From assembly GCF_000143415.4 (NCBI RefSeq), contig NW_003314342.1:1-6744 (forward strand): a stretch of 6,744 nt of DNA. The letters run 5' to 3'. Under the pieces are notes generated by a model. The model was not told the DNA's origin. It saw nothing but the letters and a program-made list of their open reading frames with translations, and did no database searches. The number at the start of each line of letters is the position of its first letter. Positions within the stretch are counted from its first letter, which is position 1. The DNA comes from Selaginella moellendorffii. Taxonomy: Eukaryota > Plantae > Lycopodiophyta. Position numbers and translations under genes: made by a program. This document shows positions 1 through 6,744 of this stretch, in pieces.

Positions 1-304
1 GTGACCACGAACCGACAAGTCATACCTCAAGCCTCGGATTGCTCCCAACCCCCTGCCTCCACCCGGTTGCCTACTTTAACCAAGCCCCGGACCACCCAGC
101 AGTCTTGGCGCACAGGGATGACATCAGCCCTAACCTCTTGCTCACTTCTGAGCTTCTCCCCCCTTAAGAAAAAAGGTCTGTTGTTCTCTTGGAGTTCAAG
201 AGGCATCCTCTTCACCGTCTCCTCTGTTTTTGCTAGCTAGTTAGCTCTTACAAGAAGGAGCACAAGCCAAGTTCAGCTCCATGCTCAGCTCTATCATCTC
301 CTCT

Positions 305-873
305 TTAAGACACCTCACCTCTTTGAGGCCATTCAGAAGAGCTAGCACGCTTCACCTCTAGACGTCCCCCCCCCCCCTTTTTTGCAATTGTCTCTTCAAA
401 CTCATCATACTTATTTAACTCACCAAACCTTACCAAGCCGAGTGCAGGTTTTGAAACCCCATGAGTCACCTTGGCCAACAATCTTGACGTGCGGATGCGT
501 CCAAACTGCTGGACCATTTCTCCAGGAGATAACTTATGCTACAACACTCTCCGCTCGACGATCTCAATGTGGAAAGATCCACAAAGCTGTCCCACTCATC
601 ATAGTTGTAGAAGAAATCATCCTCATACTGCATCTGCAACCTTGCTCGAGCCCAAGCCTCTGCCATTGCAAGCTTCTCCCTCATCTTGATCAGCTCACAC
701 TTGAGGCGGCAAAACAAGTCCAGGTCCTGAGGAACAACAATGGAATACACCTTTCCTGGGTACCTGTCTCGAAACCTGTGAAAGTACAGTGGACGATGTG
801 GTGTTTCAGATCGCAGTGGAATGATAACTTGATGAAAGCAACAAAACCATCGAGCTCGCTCTTTGGGGATCAA
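305..873 (-). pseudogene. Possible degraded coding fragment of unknown family
   Basis: Overlapping minus-strand frames (466-873 and 305-517) have protein-like composition (RLKCELIKMREKLAMAEAWARARLQMQYEDDFFYNYDEWDSF; GLVRFGELNKYDEFEETIAKK). Joining them needs a frameshift and read-through of a TAG. No family recognised. Confidence 0.2.
366..383. repeat. C12-T6 homopolymer tract
   Basis: C run 366-377 followed by T run 378-383. Confidence 0.9.
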
Positions 874-1252
874 TTATCATCTCCTCCTTTGAAGCAATGA
901 GCAGCAGGCCTTGATTGCATCCAGAAGTACTAGAGATAGTCTGCAAAAGCAAGTTTGACACCAGTTATTTTGGCAACACAGAAGAAAAAGAAGAAAAATA
1001 AACTCAAGTTTCAAAATTTATAGAGATCCATACAATCCAAATCAAGATCAATCTTCCACGAACTTAATGCCACTTTCAGCACCTCCAAGCTCTGCCGAAA
1101 AACATAGCCACGGTATGCCACAATCGTTCGCTTGAAAATCTGAAGATGTCAATCGAAGCATGCAAGCAAAAACATGAAGTAAAGAAGCGCAGCTGGACAA
1201 CAAAGGAGATGAACTGAGTGAGGCCAAGAACACATATAAGGACTGACTGTAA

Positions 1253-1502
1253 GCATGTGAGGCTTTGCACGGTTTTCTCCTCCGTGCGTGGCTTCATGTG
1301 CGAAGAGTTTGGTGTGGTAAGGTATGTTGCGGAGCAGCCAGAAGCCCAGGGTGAATATAAGTACATGAGGCCTTGTGAGGTTTTACCACCGCCCGAGGAC
1401 TCCTGTGCATGGGCCCCGGGCGAGAGTCATTTGCGAAAGTGTTCTGCATGAAACTGGTGCCCTGAGGCTTCTGGCCGTGTCGCCCCATGAAGAGCATTTT
1501 TT
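1253..1502 (+). ncRNA. Putative structured RNA element of unknown family
   Basis: Hand-folded: 20-bp hairpin 1253-1272/1282-1301; 17-bp stem 1337-1353/1458-1475 with one bulged A; three inner hairpins, one capped by GCGA (1433-1436); T6 at 1497-1502. No expression or covariation evidence is available. Confidence 0.4.
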
Positions 1503-1593
1503 ATATAATTGGTGTAGAGTGTGGTTTATTTTTGCATATTGAGTGTATCAATATCTTTTAGTTAGCAGATTATATTGAAGAACTGAAGACTAC

Positions 1594-1941
1594 CTACAGT
1601 TAAGTGCATGCAGCAACAGATTATATAAAAAATGAATGCAGAGAATAACAAATCAGGATTTCTAGGAAGTTCGTGCGTAATAATAATAATAATCATAAAA
1701 ACCTGATGTTCAGCCAGTTAGAAGATTGTCTGAAAATTATGCATGATTCTTCAGCTCTTGAGCAACTGATTGCTGCTGGCTCACTTTCTATATATATCAA
1801 AGAAACAATAAACATCTAAGCTGCTGCAGTTAAGCTGTGACATTGTAAAGTTTAAAAAGGAAAAGAATTAGAAAAAGAAAAAACAGAAAACACGAGTTTT
1901 TTACTGCTACAGTTAAGTACTAACAAATCGGGATTTCTAGG
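1594..1941 (+). repeat. Short dispersed direct repeats in the AT-rich upstream region
   Basis: CTACAGTTAAGT at 1594-1605 and 1907-1918; TAACAAATC(A/G)GGATTTCTAGG at 1646-1666 and 1921-1941 (20/21); CTGCT(G/A)CAGTTAAG at 1821-1834 and 1904-1917. Confidence 0.8.
1678..1692. repeat. (TAA)5 microsatellite
   Basis: Direct read. Confidence 0.85.
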
Positions 1942-1956
1942 GTATGCGTGCGGCGC

Positions 1957-1964
1957 TAGGGTTT
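1957..1964 (-). promoter_or_regulatory. Telo-box (AAACCCTA) just upstream of the PPR start
   Basis: TAGGGTTT on the + strand, ~40 nt upstream of ATG 2003. Telo-boxes are common near plant transcription starts, but an 8-mer can occur by chance. Confidence 0.35.
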
Positions 1965-2002
1965 GTGTGGTGTGTGTGCAACAATCTCATGCAGTTTCAA
2001 AC

Positions 2003-5000
2003 ATGTTTCTACCGGAGAGAGGGATCGCCAACAGGAAAACACCAACCTGGGTCTCTGCAAAACTCGAGTCGCTCGCTGACCCAGCTGTAGGTAAGGCCAC
2101 CACGGCTCGCTACAAATCTCCACATACACCTGTAGCTGGTGATGAACCGGTGAGTTTAGGGAGGCTGATATACCGCGTGAGAGACTCAGCTGAGAGCAGA
2201 TCCCTTTCTTTGGGAAAACAAGCCCATGAAGCTGTGCTCAAGAGTGATGAGCACAAAAGCAACATCTACTTGTTGACGGGATTGATCGATATGTACTGCA
2301 AGTGTGGCGAGCTTGAGGAGGCTCGCAAGATTTTCGACTCCATGGGAACCCGGAGTGTTGTGTCCTACAACGCGATCATCAAGGGCTGCGGCTCGAACGG
2401 GCAAGCTGAACTTGCTCTGGAGTACTACTCTGCCCTGAGAGCTTGTACCACCATTCAACCCAACGATCGGACACATGTCGCGGTGATCAGCGCCTGCTCC
2501 AGACTTGCTACCGAATCCAGCGAGAAGAGGGAGAGAGCTCTGCGCATCGGGATGGAGATCCATTCAATGCTGAGCAAGGAGAAGAAACAGGTAGATCTGT
2601 TCGTGGCGACTTGCCTGGTCGACATGTACTGCAAGTGTGGCGAGCTTGAGGAGGCTCGCAAGATTTTCCACTCCATGGGAACTCGGAGTGTTGTGTCCTA
2701 CAACGCGATCATCCACGGCTGCGGCTCGAACGGGCAAGCTGAACTTGCTCTGGAGTACTACTCTGCCCTGAGAGCTGATAACACCATTCAACCTGACGAT
2801 TGGACACATGTCGCGGTGATCAGCGCCTGCTCCACACTTGCTACTGCCAGCGAGAAGAGGGAGAGAGCTCTACGCATCGGGATGCAAGTCCATTCAGTAC
2901 TGAGCAAGGAGAAGAAACATCTAGGTCTGTTCGTGGCGAATTGCCTGGTAGACATGTACTGCAAGTGTGGCGAGCTTGAGGAGGCTCGCAAGATTTTCCA
3001 CTCCATGGGAACTCGGAGTGTTGTGTCCTACACCGCGATCATCCAGGGGTGCAACACGAACGGGCGAGCTGAACTTGCTCTAGAGTACTACTCTGCCCTG
3101 AGAGCTTGTACCACCATTCAACCCAACGATCGGACACATGTCGCGGTGATCAGCGCCTGCTCCACACTTGCTACCGAATCCAGCGAGAAGAGGGAGAGAG
3201 CTCTACGCATCGGGATGGAAGTCCATTCAGTACTGAGCAAGGAGAAGAAACATCTAGGTCTGTACATGGCGACTTGCCTGGTAGACATGTACTGCAAGTG
3301 TGGCGAGCTTGAGGAGGCTTGCAAGATTTTCCACTCCATGGGAACTCGGAGTGTTGTGTCCTACACCGCGATCATCCAGGGGTGCAACACGAACGGGCGA
3401 GCTGAACTTGCTCTGGAGTACTACTCTGCCCTGAGAGCTGATAACACCATTCAACCCGACGATCGGACTCATGTCGTGGTGATCAGCGCCTGCTCCACAC
3501 TTGCTACCGAATCCAGCGAGAAGAGGGAGAGAGCTCTATGCATCGGGATGGAGATCCATTCAATGCTGAGCAAGGAGAAGAAACAGCTAGCTCTGTTCGT
3601 GGCGAATTGCCTGGTAGACATGTACTGCAAGTGTGGCGAGCTTGAGGAGGCTCGCAAGATTTTCCACTCCATGGGAACTCGGAGTGTTGTGTCCTACACC
3701 GCGATCATCCAGGGGTGCAACACGAACGGGCGAGCTGAACTTGCTCTGGAGTACTACTCTGCCCTGAGAGCTGATAACACCATTCAACCCGACGATCGGA
3801 CTCATGTCGTGGTGATCAGCGCCTGCTCCACACTTGCTACCGAATCCAGCGAGAAGAGGGAGAGAGCTCTACGCATCGGGATGGAGATCCATTCAATGCT
3901 GAGCAAGGAGAAGAAACAGCTAGATCTGTTCGTGGCGACTTGCCTGGTAGACATGTACTGCAAGTGTGGCGAGCTTGAGGAGGCTCGCAAGATTTTCCAC
4001 TCCATGGGAACTCGGAGTGTTGTCTCCTACACCGCAATCATCCAGGGCTGCAACATGAACGGGCGAGGTGAACTTGCTCTGGAGTACTACTCTGCCCTGA
4101 GAGCTGATAACACCATTCAACCCGACGATCGGACTCATGTCGCGGTGATCAGTGCCTGCTCCACACTTGCTACCGAATCCAGCGAGAAGAGGGAGAGAGC
4201 TCTACGCATCGGGATGGAGATCCATTCAATGCTGAGCAAGGAGAAGAAACAGCTAGATCTATTCGTGGCGAATTGCCTGGTAGACATGTATTGCAAGTGT
4301 GGCGAGCTTGAGGAGGCTCGCAAGATTTTCAACTCCATGGGAACTCGGAGTGTTGTGTCCTACACTGCGATCATCCAGGGCTGCAACACGAACGGGCAAG
4401 CTGAACTTGCTCTGGAGTATTACTCTGCCCTGAGAGCTGATAACACCGTTCAAGCTGATGCTTGCACCTACACCTGTGTCCTTGTTGCTTGCGGGAGTGT
4501 GATGGCGATCAAGCTCGGGAGGGAGATTCACCAGCTGGCGAAGCATAAAGGGCTGCTGAAAAACAATCCAGTTCTGGGCTCCAGCCTGGTGAGCTTCTAC
4601 GGCAAATGTGGCGATGTTGATTCTGCTCAGGAAGCGTTTGACGAGTGCCGAGCTCGGGACGACACGGGTCTCTGGAACTCTCTCATACAGGCTTACACTC
4701 TCCAGGGCCGATCGATCGAGGCCTTGGAGCGTTTCTATTCCATGACTCAGGAGGAGGGCTGTAAAGCTGACGATGTGAGTTTTGTTTCGGTGTTGAACGC
4801 TTGCAGCCATGGTGGTCTGGTCGGGAAAGGAAGGCAGCTTCTGGATGAAATGCCCAAGCAGTATGGAGTCAAGCCACGTCTGGAGCATTATGTGTGCCTG
4901 ATCGATATGCTCGGGCGAGCTAACCTCCTCGACGAAGCTGTGAGAGTTCTCAGAGCCATGCCTTTTGAACCGGATGCAGTGGTTTGGACGTCCCTGCTCG

Positions 5001-5596
5001 GAGCCTGCCGGAAGTGGAAGAATTACACGATCGGCAAACTCGCGTTTGAGCGTCTTGTGGAGATGGATCCCAAGAGCGGCACGCCCTACGCATTGATGGC
5101 CAATATATTTGGAAACCTGGGGATGCTCAGTGAAAGGGCCGCTGTTGTGGAGAGAATGAGAGGTGAAGGCAGCTTCAGGGAGCCCGGGAGAAGCTGGTGG
5201 ACGGATGTTTGCTCAGGAAAAGTGCATTCTTTTTCTGTCGAGGATAGGAGTCACTCACAGAGCGACGAGATTGCGGCCAAGCTCAAGCAATTGTTGCTGA
5301 GAATGAAAGAGGAGGGGTATGCGAGCGATGTGATCAACGTTCTAAAAGACATACCCGAGGAAGAGAAAGAGGATCACCTGTGCGGCCACAGTGAGAAGCT
5401 TGCGCTGGGGTGTGCTCTGGTGAACTCGCACCAGAAGGAGACCATCAGAATTGTGAAAAATCTCCGAGTTTGTGACGATTGCCATGCGGCCACTGCTCTC
5501 ATCTCTAAGCTGGAAAAAAGGCTAATCATCTGCAAAGATGCCAGTCGGGTTCATGTGTTCCAGGATGGCAGATGTTCCTGTGACAACTACTTTTGA
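2003..5596 (+). CDS. PLS-class PPR-E1-E2-DYW protein (DYW:WW subtype), putative organellar C-to-U RNA editing factor
   Basis: Uninterrupted ORF; the track starts it at GTG 1967, and the first in-frame ATG is 2003 (A at -3). Hand parse: degenerate L (2147-2263), [S-P-longL]x6 + S-P (2264-4459), L1 4460-4567, S1 4568-4663, P2 4664-4771, L2 4772-4879, S2 4880-4975, E1 4976-5077, E2 5078-5179, DYW 5180-5593, TGA 5594-5596. Typical motifs: LVDMYCKCGELEEARKIF, SFVSVLNACSHGGLV, EHYVCLIDMLGRA, VVWTSLLGACR. The start codon is uncertain. Confidence 0.95.
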   Translation: MFLPERGIANRKTPTWVSAKLESLADPAVGKATTARYKSPHTPVAGDEPVSLGRLIYRVRDSAESRSLSLGKQAHEAVLKSDEHKSNIYLLTGLIDMYCKCGELEEARKIFDSMGTRSVVSYNAIIKGCGSNGQAELALEYYSALRACTTIQPNDRTHVAVISACSRLATESSEKRERALRIGMEIHSMLSKEKKQVDLFVATCLVDMYCKCGELEEARKIFHSMGTRSVVSYNAIIHGCGSNGQAELALEYYSALRADNTIQPDDWTHVAVISACSTLATASEKRERALRIGMQVHSVLSKEKKHLGLFVANCLVDMYCKCGELEEARKIFHSMGTRSVVSYTAIIQGCNTNGRAELALEYYSALRACTTIQPNDRTHVAVISACSTLATESSEKRERALRIGMEVHSVLSKEKKHLGLYMATCLVDMYCKCGELEEACKIFHSMGTRSVVSYTAIIQGCNTNGRAELALEYYSALRADNTIQPDDRTHVVVISACSTLATESSEKRERALCIGMEIHSMLSKEKKQLALFVANCLVDMYCKCGELEEARKIFHSMGTRSVVSYTAIIQGCNTNGRAELALEYYSALRADNTIQPDDRTHVVVISACSTLATESSEKRERALRIGMEIHSMLSKEKKQLDLFVATCLVDMYCKCGELEEARKIFHSMGTRSVVSYTAIIQGCNMNGRGELALEYYSALRADNTIQPDDRTHVAVISACSTLATESSEKRERALRIGMEIHSMLSKEKKQLDLFVANCLVDMYCKCGELEEARKIFNSMGTRSVVSYTAIIQGCNTNGQAELALEYYSALRADNTVQADACTYTCVLVACGSVMAIKLGREIHQLAKHKGLLKNNPVLGSSLVSFYGKCGDVDSAQEAFDECRARDDTGLWNSLIQAYTLQGRSIEALERFYSMTQEEGCKADDVSFVSVLNACSHGGLVGKGRQLLDEMPKQYGVKPRLEHYVCLIDMLGRANLLDEAVRVLRAMPFEPDAVVWTSLLGACRKWKNYTIGKLAFERLVEMDPKSGTPYALMANIFGNLGMLSERAAVVERMRGEGSFREPGRSWWTDVCSGKVHSFSVEDRSHSQSDEIAAKLKQLLLRMKEEGYASDVINVLKDIPEEEKEDHLCGHSEKLALGCALVNSHQKETIRIVKNLRVCDDCHAATALISKLEKRLIICKDASRVHVFQDGRCSCDNYF
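2264..4459 (+). repeat. Coding tandem array of ~6.5 near-identical 333-bp (111-aa) S-P-long-L PPR triplets
   Basis: The anchor ATGTA(C/T)TGCAAGTGTGGCGAGCTTGAGGAGGCT occurs at 2291, 2624, 2954, 3287, 3620, 3953 and 4286. Spacing is 333, 330, 333, 333, 333, 333; unit 2 has a 3-nt deletion near 2846. Confidence 0.98.
5180..5593 (+). other. DYW cytidine-deaminase domain, WW subtype
   Basis: PG box EPGRSWWTD; Zn-deaminase signature HSEK (5387-5398) and CDDCH (5471-5485); second Zn-site HxxxxxxCSC; ATALISKLE..IIC segment; C-terminal tripeptide NYF in place of DYW. Confidence 0.92.
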
Positions 5597-5942
5597 AAAC
5601 ATGTCAGTGCTCTTTCTTGCAGTTATCCCTGGTTTTAAACCCTCTGTGAGTCAAGCAGAAACATGGGCCGCTGAGTGAGCAAAGTACTGCTGTCAACCTG
5701 AACTTCACGGAGAAAAAATTAACATTTAAAGTTAAAACTATGCAAAAGGAGGATGACACGTTGTCTTAAATTTAAATTTCTTTTTGGTAGCCAGGAATGC
5801 TGTCAGTCGCATGGGGGCTTGGTGGGGAGCTGGGTTCTGAGGTGACTGACGCAAAACATGTACGTGCCTGCATGCCCTTTGCGCGTGCACTAAGTAAGCA
5901 TGTGGTGGAGGACATAGGTGCCCCAAAACGGAGTGCCCAGAT

Positions 5943-6250
5943 TCAGATAATAAGCCTTAGTATGAACCCAAACTCTTTGCTGATAGCAAGTACCGCCTCA
6001 TGTTCCGGGAGCAAGGTGATGGTGGCTTGCGGCATGACCAACTTTGGGTTTGTGCTCCTAGAGCACGTTGAAGACGTGTGGAAGCTGGTGACGATGGCAT
6101 TTGTTTCTTGCAACGTACTCACTAGCTCCTCGGCGACGTCTTCCTTCCAGATTTTTTGAGCTTGTCATGAGTGGTGATCTGCTTGCTCTCTCCTGTGACG
6201 ACTTCTTCCAGCCTCTGGTGCCCAACCTCAAGGCTCTCTTGTGGATGGAG
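5943..6250 (-). pseudogene. Possible frameshifted coding fragment of unknown family, convergent with the PPR gene
   Basis: Two minus-strand open stretches (LHPQESLEVGHQRLEEVVTGESKQITTHDKLKK and IWKEDVAEELVSTLQETNAIV...EFGFILRLII*) abut at the T6/A6 run near 6152-6157. No family recognised. Confidence 0.15.
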
Positions 6251-6263
6251 CTAGCCCTACACA

Positions 6264-6279
6264 GTGTGTGTGTGTGTGT
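6264..6279. repeat. (GT)8 microsatellite
   Basis: Direct read. Confidence 0.9.
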
Positions 6280-6744
6280 CAACCAGCAGATGCACAAATC
6301 GTTGAGAATTAGCAACAAGTGTGTATCATAGGCTTAGTATGTAGTGTACTAGTGTACATGTACATGTGTTTCAGCTAAATATAATGGGCCAAATACACCG
6401 AAGAAGTGTGTATAAGAAGAGTAGAAACAAATTAAGAAATGTAAATTAAGAAGTGCAAAAGAGATGAAAATAAAAATTGTCCATCCTCATCAGTTTGCTG
6501 AAATTAAGTTGGATTCAATTCTTCCAGCTCCAAATATTGTGTGATTGAGTTGTAAGTTAATTAATAGTAGAAAATAAGAAAAAAAACAAACATTGAAAAA
6601 ATAGTGTTTGATAATATCTTCTTTGCTTTTAGTTTTTTATTTTCGAAAGAAAATTAGTGGGGGAGTGCTGGTAAAGATATCTTTGCCGTTCATTGGTGGT
6701 TAATTAAATGAGCATGTTTAGAGATGTTTATAAGAGTTTAGCTC

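Follow-up and report, generated by a model that had tools for sequence, protein, structure and literature searches.

The first 6.7 kb of a Selaginella moellendorffii scaffold (GL377646.1:1-6744 of GCA_000143415.2; the whole 6,744-nt stretch is called the window here) encodes a PPR protein in which one motif triplet recurs nearly unchanged, and it raises the question of how such an array came about. A preliminary description, made from the sequence alone, had read the array as "TALE-like", a homogenised triplet scaffold in which the base-specifying residues are swapped between copies to retarget a natural editor. The features on which our analysis rests are collected in Table 1. The long frame can alternatively be opened by a GTG at 1967, which gives the same single ORF as the ATG, with the stop at 5596. 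In the flanks, neither ORFs with a Pfam domain nor notable repeats were found.

Table 1. Features of the window, a contig at a scaffold end.
Feature	Position	Strand	Extent, content or basis
Upstream flank	1..1988	+	part of a segmentally duplicated block common to paralogous loci
Remnant of the family start region	1989..2021	+	alignment with four paralogues and paralogue N-termini
Open frame	2003(ATG)-5596	+	1197 codons plus stop, uninterrupted; PLS-class PPR-E1-E2-E+-DYW protein
Array in motif register	2264..4459	+	6.5 units of 333 nt; Tandem Repeats Finder (TRF) and unit alignment
Units 3-5, test piece for folding	2927..3925	+	AlphaFold2, single sequence: pLDDT 83.3, pTM 0.69
C-terminal PPR motifs, non-repeated (L, S, P2, L2, S2)	4460..5020	+	translation
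E motif (5021-5197) and E+ motif (5222-5305)	5021..5305	+	Pfam
DYW-type cytidine deaminase domain	5315..5590	+	Pfam DYW_deaminase E=2.9e-31, profile positions 1-92 of 93
3' flank	5597..6744	+	duplicated block too; contig ends at 6744, followed by a 6.2-kb N run in the scaffold

Tandem Repeats Finder returned a single array at 2291-4453 with a period of 333, 6.5 copies, 95% matches, no indels and a score of 3808, in agreement with the ~6.5 copies of a 333-bp S-P-long L unit read earlier; the array lies within one open frame. Set in motif register, the units begin at 2264, 2597, 2927, 3260, 3593, 3926 and 4259, each consisting of an S (31 aa), a P (36 aa) and a long L (44 aa) motif; unit 2 is short by one codon, and unit 7 departs from the repeat after approximately codon 63-66. 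Pairs of units differ at 6-25 positions per ~333 nt, which is the near-identical tandem repetition of a TALE-like architecture. The near-identity therefore stands, but the claim that it extends even to synonymous sites was overstated, because pS between units ranges from 0.00 to 0.14 and is mostly 0.05-0.14 (pN 0.014-0.073). Such an array is highly exceptional among PPR proteins. Its best 70-aa self-match reaches 100% identity, whereas the median for 120 other long PPR proteins is 56%, and only two of those 120, both from Sphagnum, reach a self-match of at least 90%. We considered a 666-bp higher-order repeat as the source of the alternation between T and N at the fifth S residue and rejected it for the array as a whole, since neighbouring units share other variants and TRF detected only the 333 period; it is possible for part of the array.

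The domain content places the array ahead of a complete editing-type C-terminus. Pfam detected PPR_2 (E=2.8e-98), PPR (E=3.6e-88) and PPR_1 (E=2e-57), and the manual register S31-P36-L44 gives the P-L-S triplet order, with the helix pairs of the predicted model fitting each motif. The E motif scores 36.4 bits (E=6.3e-9; cut-off 27.3) and the E+ motif 20.9 bits (E=3.1e-4), which is under its curated cut-off of 24 bits. Both catalytic signatures of the DYW domain are intact, with HxE represented by an HSE motif from 5387 and CxxC by CDDC at ~5471-5485, and the protein ends in DNYF. The AlphaFold2 model of units 3-5 is a continuous helical-hairpin solenoid in which a 9-aa insert extends helix B of the L motif to ~21 residues; its best Foldseek matches are a synthetic PPR-DYW protein with RNA (9kfx, E=2e-11) and a designer PLS-type PPR (5iww). 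One P-L-S triplet scaffold tandemly amplified ahead of an intact E-DYW deaminase, as first described, is borne out.

The window copy belongs to a family of nine loci on four scaffolds, with several loci per scaffold and at least eight besides the window copy. Five of the others have arrays of the same 333-nt unit in open frames, the kind of gene that the preliminary description had proposed to look for in the source genome: L002 with 6.5 units, L003 and L004 with 4.5 each, L006 with at least 4.5 and an N gap inside the array, and L007 with 3.5. Three loci are decayed, namely L009 (5.5 units, with a frameshift ahead of the DYW domain), L008 (fragments) and L005 (C-terminal part only). The non-repeated PPR motifs are 98.2-99.6% identical in nucleotide sequence to those of the paralogues. 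Over the whole C-terminal part (4460-5593) the pooled pN/pS among paralogues is 0.31, and among units it is 0.64-0.75. Blastn of the upstream flank against the upstream regions of L002, L003, L004, L006 and L007 gave 87-96% identity, and L002 and L003 are colinear over ~16 kb. Retroposition was rejected as the route by which these copies spread, since kilobases of upstream and downstream flank were duplicated with them.

Whether the array was homogenised within its gene is answered by the units of the paralogues. The mean unit-to-unit distance is 5.1% within a gene versus 4.9% between genes, and window units 1, 2, 3 and 7 are each closest to the unit at the matching position in a paralogue; unit 2 has 0 differences in 162 nt from unit 2 of L002. 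The units are therefore alike because the family shares a young array; we rejected within-gene concerted evolution, and the term "homogenised" is not supported. These distances place the array before the gene duplications. The units are mosaics: 437 of 990 site pairs are incompatible under the four-gamete test, with an Rmin of 16 within 333 nt, and the shuffling has hit all common variants alike. Nine loci, arrays of 3.5-6.5 units and this Rmin describe a multi-copy family reshaped by recombination, with gain and loss of motifs.

The residues that specify the bound base have to be seen against this background. Along units 1-7 the fifth and last residues of the S motifs are TS, TS, NS, TS, NS, TS and NS, those of the P motifs NN, ND, TN, TD, TD, TD and TD, and those of the long L motifs VD, VG, VG, VA, VD and VD; every entry in the earlier lists was correct on re-reading. 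Variation is enriched at these code positions. In the window array 25 of 111 amino-acid columns are variable and include four of the six code positions (P=0.0225), and across 33 units from six paralogues four of the six are among 19 common polymorphic columns (P=0.008; Mann-Whitney P=0.002), although these tests take columns as independent and the variants are linked. The four common variants at base-specifying positions are S5, P5, P-last and L-last.

It is tempting to see in this a natural designer PPR, in which selection swaps only the fifth and last residues as in the repeat-variable diresidues of TALEs, and besides the enrichment, the T/N alternation of S5 along the array, the three states of L-last and the four code residues by which the two 6.5-unit paralogues (the window copy and L002) differ are in its favour. 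The variation is, however, not confined to the specificity residues: non-code positions supply 84% of the window's variable columns (21 of 25) and 15 of the 19 common polymorphic ones across the family, which is what undoes the label "TALE-like". Among the 33 family units piN/piS is 0.86 at code columns, not above 1, compared with 0.72 elsewhere, a comparison of few sites that is confounded by recombination. P5 is linked in a block with P12/13/16 and P-last with P30/31, the common code variants show no more homoplasy than the rest of the common variants, and the differences between the window copy and L002, three of the four being in P or S motifs, sit within multi-residue replacement blocks. 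Together with the absence of homogenisation within the gene, these observations make selection restricted to the code residues unlikely, and the designer reading as a whole is only partly supported; the code residues do differ between copies, but a targeted process of swapping is not supported. The excess that is seen at code positions would follow from a relaxed structural constraint on residues that face the RNA, and positive selection there is possible.

The array, or at least the number and order of its units, might instead have been produced by misassembly of near-identical paralogues or repeats. The assembly consists of short contigs with N gaps between them, the window is a contig of 6.7 kb at a scaffold end with a 6.2-kb gap next to it, and the array of L006 itself holds a gap; only about half of the sampled words are present in public runs, and the contigs from other runs that matched the array are only 60-130 nt long. 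An artefact is nevertheless highly improbable, since the arrays of seven loci have open frames and unit orders that are internally consistent but differ between loci, and diagnostic variants tell the units apart. A DNA run dated 2024 (X1) reaches at least 98% in every one of the 30 bins. Its contigs span the 10-nt deletion near 5679 in the 3' flank that is specific to the window copy, without the 10-nt insert, and have no insertion at the N-terminal deletions; unit-specific contigs occur in three further runs from different studies.

We therefore favour, at a probability of about three in four, the view that the window copy is a member of a young, segmentally duplicated PLS-class PPR-DYW family that evolves by birth and death, and whose array was amplified in the family ancestor and its units shuffled since. 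PLS-class PPR-DYW proteins are the type that directs C-to-U RNA editing in organelles. According to this model, a single P-L-S triplet whose L motif was unusually long would have been tandemly amplified in the ancestor, most likely by unequal crossing-over. Later unequal crossing-over and gene conversion, both between units and between paralogues, would have changed the copy number to 3.5-6.5 and combined a restricted set of ~19 common amino-acid variants into mosaic units. If the protein works like characterised PPR-DYW factors, each motif of the array would contact one base of a single-stranded RNA upstream of the target C, which the DYW domain with its intact HxE and CxxC would deaminate.

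Membership of the family does not make the window copy a working editor. The ancestral ATG is at 1989-1991, and an 86-nt deletion between 1994 and 1995 combined with a 5-nt deletion between 2021 and 2022 has eliminated the N-terminal motif of PDF type and left the old ATG in another frame, so that the copy is without the N-terminal ~43 residues of the family and may be inactive or altered. With the family start codon and N-terminal module lost, the label "editor" given to it earlier is not supported for this copy. That it is a young pseudogene or otherwise inactive family member, with an array that is real yet no longer used, is a less probable reading that deserves serious attention: the old ATG opens a short out-of-frame reading frame, and clear wrecks exist in the family (the frameshifted L009, the fragments of L008 and the truncated L005). 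In the C-terminal part and 3'UTR, contigs of two runs guessed to be RNA (X3 and X10) have the alleles of paralogues instead of those of the window copy, and therefore indicate at most expression of the family; none of the matched X3 and X10 contigs covers 1900-2300. Against inactivity, the 1197-codon frame is intact with an in-frame ATG at 2003, and the C-terminal part differs from that of L003 by only three synonymous changes and one replacement, but neither point is decisive, because a copy of this age would be open even if dead.

The family has counterparts in several known systems and coincides with none. With the PLS-class PPR-DYW C-to-U factors, such as moss PPR56 and PPR65 and the DYW-type proteins of Arabidopsis, it shares the P-L-S order, E1/E2/E+, a full DYW domain with HxE and CxxC and, in the predicted model, the PPR solenoid fold, with 9kfx and 5iww as the nearest structures. 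The motifs of those factors are normally strongly diverged, whereas the S. moellendorffii triplets are 92.5-98% identical in DNA, and the S. moellendorffii protein differs further in its 44-aa L motif, lengthened helix B and DNYF end. The family normally begins with a PDF-type motif, unlike the window copy. A PDF-type start is also found in the two Sphagnum PPR-DYW proteins (P0064 and P0044), whose adjacent 101-aa triplets are 90-99% identical; these have only two or three triplet copies and an L motif of standard length, in contrast to the longer L of S. moellendorffii. TAL effector arrays are likewise tandem arrays of near-identical repeats that read one base per module and recombine between repeats, but they differ in fold, ligand and kingdom. 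Hardly anything varies in them beyond the two specificity residues, whereas the S. moellendorffii array varies mostly outside such positions.

The RFL clusters are also young multi-copy families, and the mosaic units, variable unit number and code-column enrichment seen here resemble them. Diversifying selection is documented for RFL genes, whereas piN/piS in the S. moellendorffii family is below 1 even at code columns. In the P-class RFL genes, recombination duplicates, deletes and transposes PPR motifs and so alters the predicted targets (PMC5075784). RFL proteins are P-class proteins of seed plants and have no deaminase; here the architecture is PLS-E-DYW, and a whole P-L-S triplet is exchanged in an editing-type protein of a lycophyte. 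Synthetic consensus PLS- and S-type editing factors (dsn3PLS-DYW, 9S-DYW and the GRASP kit) join arrays of identical motifs to E-DYW (PMC8809517; GRASP preprint), and they are alike in that (nearly) identical motifs differ at the fifth and last residues. The synthetic arrays vary at code residues only, by design, whereas the S. moellendorffii units also vary at ~15 other common positions. Our literature search did not find natural near-identical PLS arrays described, although an earlier description may exist.

PPR-DYW editing factors are thought to acquire targets slowly, through point changes in diverged motifs. The family shows a second route, in which entire P-L-S triplets are multiplied and shuffled, both among positions and among gene copies, altering several base-specifying residues at once and leaving the deaminase end unchanged. 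The sister genes differ in the number and order of their units and therefore in predicted targets: their C-terminal L-S-P2-L2-S2-E1-E2-DYW regions are near-identical and their predicted distal RNA footprints differ. If the copies are active, they constitute a natural experiment on the share of distal PPR motifs in site choice. Selaginella has thousands of organellar editing sites. We raise tentatively, as a rather doubtful extension, that the family could be a natural cassette system in which near-identical triplets that differ in their base-specifying residues pass between positions and between paralogues, with selection retaining the products as editing sites turn over, so that new editing specificities arise. 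If true, this would amount to an RFL-like process in DYW editing factors and would provide a natural PLS scaffold tolerant of identical repeats. Lycophytes are reported to lack MORF cofactors; active copies would offer builders of programmable RNA editors a natural near-identical PLS scaffold from such a lineage, which, if the cassette reading holds, may be usable as a programmable editor because those cofactors are lacking.

The public gene models of the family are wrong, with arrays spliced out or proteins beginning at internal methionines. The model for the window copy (P0121, 617 aa) has the same span but skips 2375-3889 and 3980-4204 as if they were introns; these are not canonical introns, because they start with AT or GA and end with TC or TA, and the model splices the array out wrongly. 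The gene could pass for an orphan, as a word search with the full-length protein found only paralogues of 32-43% identity and an exact look-up was empty. We rejected that idea: the impression arises because the public family models are less than 0.55 of the true length, and the family was recovered by searching with the C-terminal 445 aa. Any catalogue of Selaginella PPR proteins that relies on the public models would misrepresent the family.

The array in the window is best read as part of a young, recombining PPR-DYW gene family whose members carry a variable number of shuffled triplets. The preliminary description reported near-identical 333-bp PPR units, and this observation is confirmed: Tandem Repeats Finder returned one tandem array of period 333 with 6.5 copies, 95% matches and zero indels, and the 5th and last residues listed for each motif were all correct when rechecked on the translated units. 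The accompanying interpretation, a TALE-like, homogenised scaffold in which code residues are swapped, is borne out only partly. Each repeat follows the usual S1-P1-L1 layout of a PLS-class triplet except in two respects: its P motif is 36 residues long, and a 9-residue insert brings its L motif to 44; unit 2 is one codon short, and unit 7 departs from the repeat past about codon 63-66. The AlphaFold2 model of units 3-5 (single sequence, pLDDT 83) is a continuous helical-hairpin solenoid in which the L motif's helix B, extended by the insert, is predicted to reach about 21 residues. The nearest solved structures to this model are 9kfx, an RNA-bound synthetic PPR-DYW protein, and 5iww, a designer PLS protein.

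Pfam matches in the product of the long open frame are to numerous PPR motifs, to the DYW deaminase domain over its full length (E=2.9e-31), to an E motif and, weakly, to an E+ motif; HSE and CDDC are both found, and the C-terminal end is DNYF. With the non-repeated C-terminal 445 residues as query, a public 617-aa S. moellendorffii protein, "DOT4, chloroplastic", is 100% identical. Its gene lies at 2003-5596 of scaffold GL377646.1 (GCA_000143415.2; first 15.6 kb examined), the first 6744 bases of which are the window, followed by a 6.2-kb run of N. The stretches left out by the 617-aa model begin with AT and GA and finish with TC and TA, and therefore are not credible introns; the unbroken 1197-codon frame describes the gene better. 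Public models are wrong across the family, with arrays excised as non-canonical "introns" or the start placed at an internal methionine; they range from 322 to 617 aa, where the true frames span roughly 900-1250 aa. Long ORFs of 81-209 aa traverse the array in antisense, recurring with the repeat, and have counterparts at L002 and L003; most likely they simply result from repeat composition.

Features of the window and of the paralogous loci L002-L009 of S. moellendorffii (each paralogue in its own locus numbering)
Feature	Locus	Position	Strand	Detail
Long ORF	window	1967 (GTG)/2003 (ATG)-5596	+	single open frame; wrong public model for 2003-5596
Stretches skipped by 617-aa model	window	2375-3889; 3980-4204
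Tandem array	window	2291-4453
Unit starts, motif register (u1-u7)	window	2264, 2597, 2927, 3260, 3593, 3926, 4259	+	unit alignment
PDF-type region	window	1989-2022		remnant
PDF-type region	L002	9998-10130		equivalents in L003, L004, L006, L007, L009
86-nt deletion	window	between 1994 and 1995
5-nt deletion	window	between 2021 and 2022
Antisense ORFs	window	2186-2809; 4259-4888	-
Upstream Pfam-less gene	window	466-1488	-
Upstream Pfam-less gene	L002	7994-9478
Upstream Pfam-less gene	L003	5688-8135
Upstream Pfam-less gene	L007	6206-7961
PPR-DYW frame	L002	10001-13705		6.5 units, open; wrong public model
PPR-DYW frame	L003	10001-13090		4.5 units, open; wrong public model
PPR-DYW frame	L004			4.5 units, open; wrong public model
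PPR-DYW frame	L006			at least 4.5 units, N gap within array, open; wrong public model
PPR-DYW frame	L007			3.5 units, open; wrong public model
Near-identical units 3 and 4	L004	9092-9757
PPR-DYW copy	L009			5.5 units; DYW part in different frame
Frameshift before DYW, E2/E+ region	L009	about 13700-14150
Near-identical units 2 and 3	L009	11482-12147
Fragmented copy	L008	9100-12900		C-terminal piece with 1.5 units; separate N-terminal piece
C-terminal part only	L005	10001-11347		model has foreign N-terminus

About ten close relatives occur in the S. moellendorffii genome (79-98% identical to the C-terminal 445 residues, all annotated short), and eight other loci were retrieved for comparison with the window. 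Arrays of the same kind do exist elsewhere in this genome: five paralogues have the 333-nt unit within frames that stay open from a PDF-type N-terminus (W-W-D-N-R ... Y-P-D-F-K-H ... L-W) through to the DYW end. The flanks are 87-96% identical across the paralogous loci, the whole window lies inside the duplicated block and L002 and L003 are colinear across about 16 kb; segmental duplication of DNA therefore produced the copies. Retroposition was rejected as their origin because the flanks were duplicated together with the gene. At several loci a minus-strand gene without a Pfam domain is called upstream of the PPR gene and appears to have been co-duplicated with it. The C-terminal coding part (window 4460-5596) is 98.2-99.6% identical among paralogues (pS 0.012-0.055), a likeness far higher than in the flanks (1-2263 and 5597-6744). 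Sequence comparison suggests that gene conversion among paralogues extends beyond the array; the C-terminal region is a mosaic, with L003 99.7% identical over 330 nt downstream and the adjoining stretch 91% identical.

Window units differ pairwise at 6-25 of about 333 nt. They are very alike, as first described, but not to the point of identity at synonymous sites (pS mostly 0.05-0.14, pN 0.014-0.073, pooled pN/pS 0.64). Nor is homogenisation supported, since the mean unit distance of 5.1% within genes is no lower than the 4.9% between genes, and these distances give no sign of gene-specific concerted evolution. Window units 1, 2, 3 and 7 each have their closest relative at the same position of a paralogue's array, with zero differences in 162 nt between unit 2 of the window and that of L002; together with the equal distances, this means that the array is older than the gene duplications. 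Units of L008, the most diverged paralogue, are about as far apart mutually as from the core family. Very recent duplications, such as the almost identical units 3 and 4 of L004 and units 2 and 3 of L009 (2/306 nt different), show that copy-number change is ongoing.

As judged from their variants, the units are mosaics: 437 of 990 informative-site pairs fail the four-gamete test, Hudson-Kaplan Rmin reaches 16 over the 333 nt, and neighbouring units of the window have variants in common, as blocks. Specific swapping of code residues is not supported. Code sites show no more incompatibility with neighbouring sites than do other common variants; P5 is linked with P12/13/16 and P-last with P30/31. 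Between the window and L002, both with 6.5 units, four code residues differ (u4 P-last, u4 L-last, u5 S5 and u5 P5), each within a multi-residue replacement block. In the PPR code TS specifies A; with TN=A, TD=G, ND=U, NN=C/U and NS=C, the predicted reads are A Y. A U. C A. A G. C G. A G. C G for the window and A Y. A U. C A. A A. A U. A G. C G for L002, with 3/14 bases changed.

The proposed enrichment of variation at code positions is real, although the most variable columns lie elsewhere. Among window units 25/111 amino-acid columns vary, including four of the six code columns (S5, P5, P-last and L-last; hypergeometric P=0.0225), or three of four when only S and P motifs are counted (P=0.035); 21 of the 25 are non-code. 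When the six open-frame loci are pooled (33 units), variation reaches 40/111 columns, of which 19 are commonly polymorphic (pairwise diversity > 0.3); these comprise the same four code columns (P=0.008) and 15 non-code positions. Diversity averages 0.32 over code columns versus 0.08 elsewhere (Mann-Whitney P=0.002), the columns of highest variability being L43, P13, P12, L13 and P16. To our knowledge, no position of any PPR motif is under less structural constraint than the RNA-facing specificity residues, so that some enrichment would be expected even if change were not selected for. In these 33 units piN/piS is 0.86 at code columns versus 0.72 elsewhere, both below 1; the lower pN/pS of the C-terminal part among paralogues (0.31) indicates that the editing end is under purifying selection and the array is more loosely constrained.

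Relative to four paralogues, the window has lost the PDF-type motif through the 86-nt and 5-nt deletions, which also throw the family ATG (1989) out of frame; the long frame is opened by a new ATG at 2003, sited between the two deletions. The window copy is an N-terminally deleted family member and may be inactive. Evidence from public runs consists of contigs, and the number and order of the window units are taken from the assembly. In a DNA run (X1) every window bin is covered at 98% or more and the copy-specific 10-nt 3'UTR deletion is spanned. Contigs of runs X3 and X10, both tentatively taken as RNA, cover the array and 3' part to about 5791, with no coverage in 1900-2300; their C, C, A, G and C at 4609, 4786, 5210, 5241 and 5320, plus a 10-nt insert, mark them as paralogue alleles and not the window's, and at most they show expression of the family.

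In P-class RFL genes, recombination is known to duplicate, delete and transpose PPR motifs, and positions 5 and 35 are highly variable (PMC5075784); synthetic PLS and S-type editors have been built from identical motifs with differing code residues (PMC8809517; GRASP preprint). A literature search of limited coverage found no description of natural multi-copy near-identical PLS arrays. Two Sphagnum PPR-DYW proteins (P0064 and P0044) contain two or three near-identical triplets each and, like the spikemoss family, begin with a PDF-type motif.
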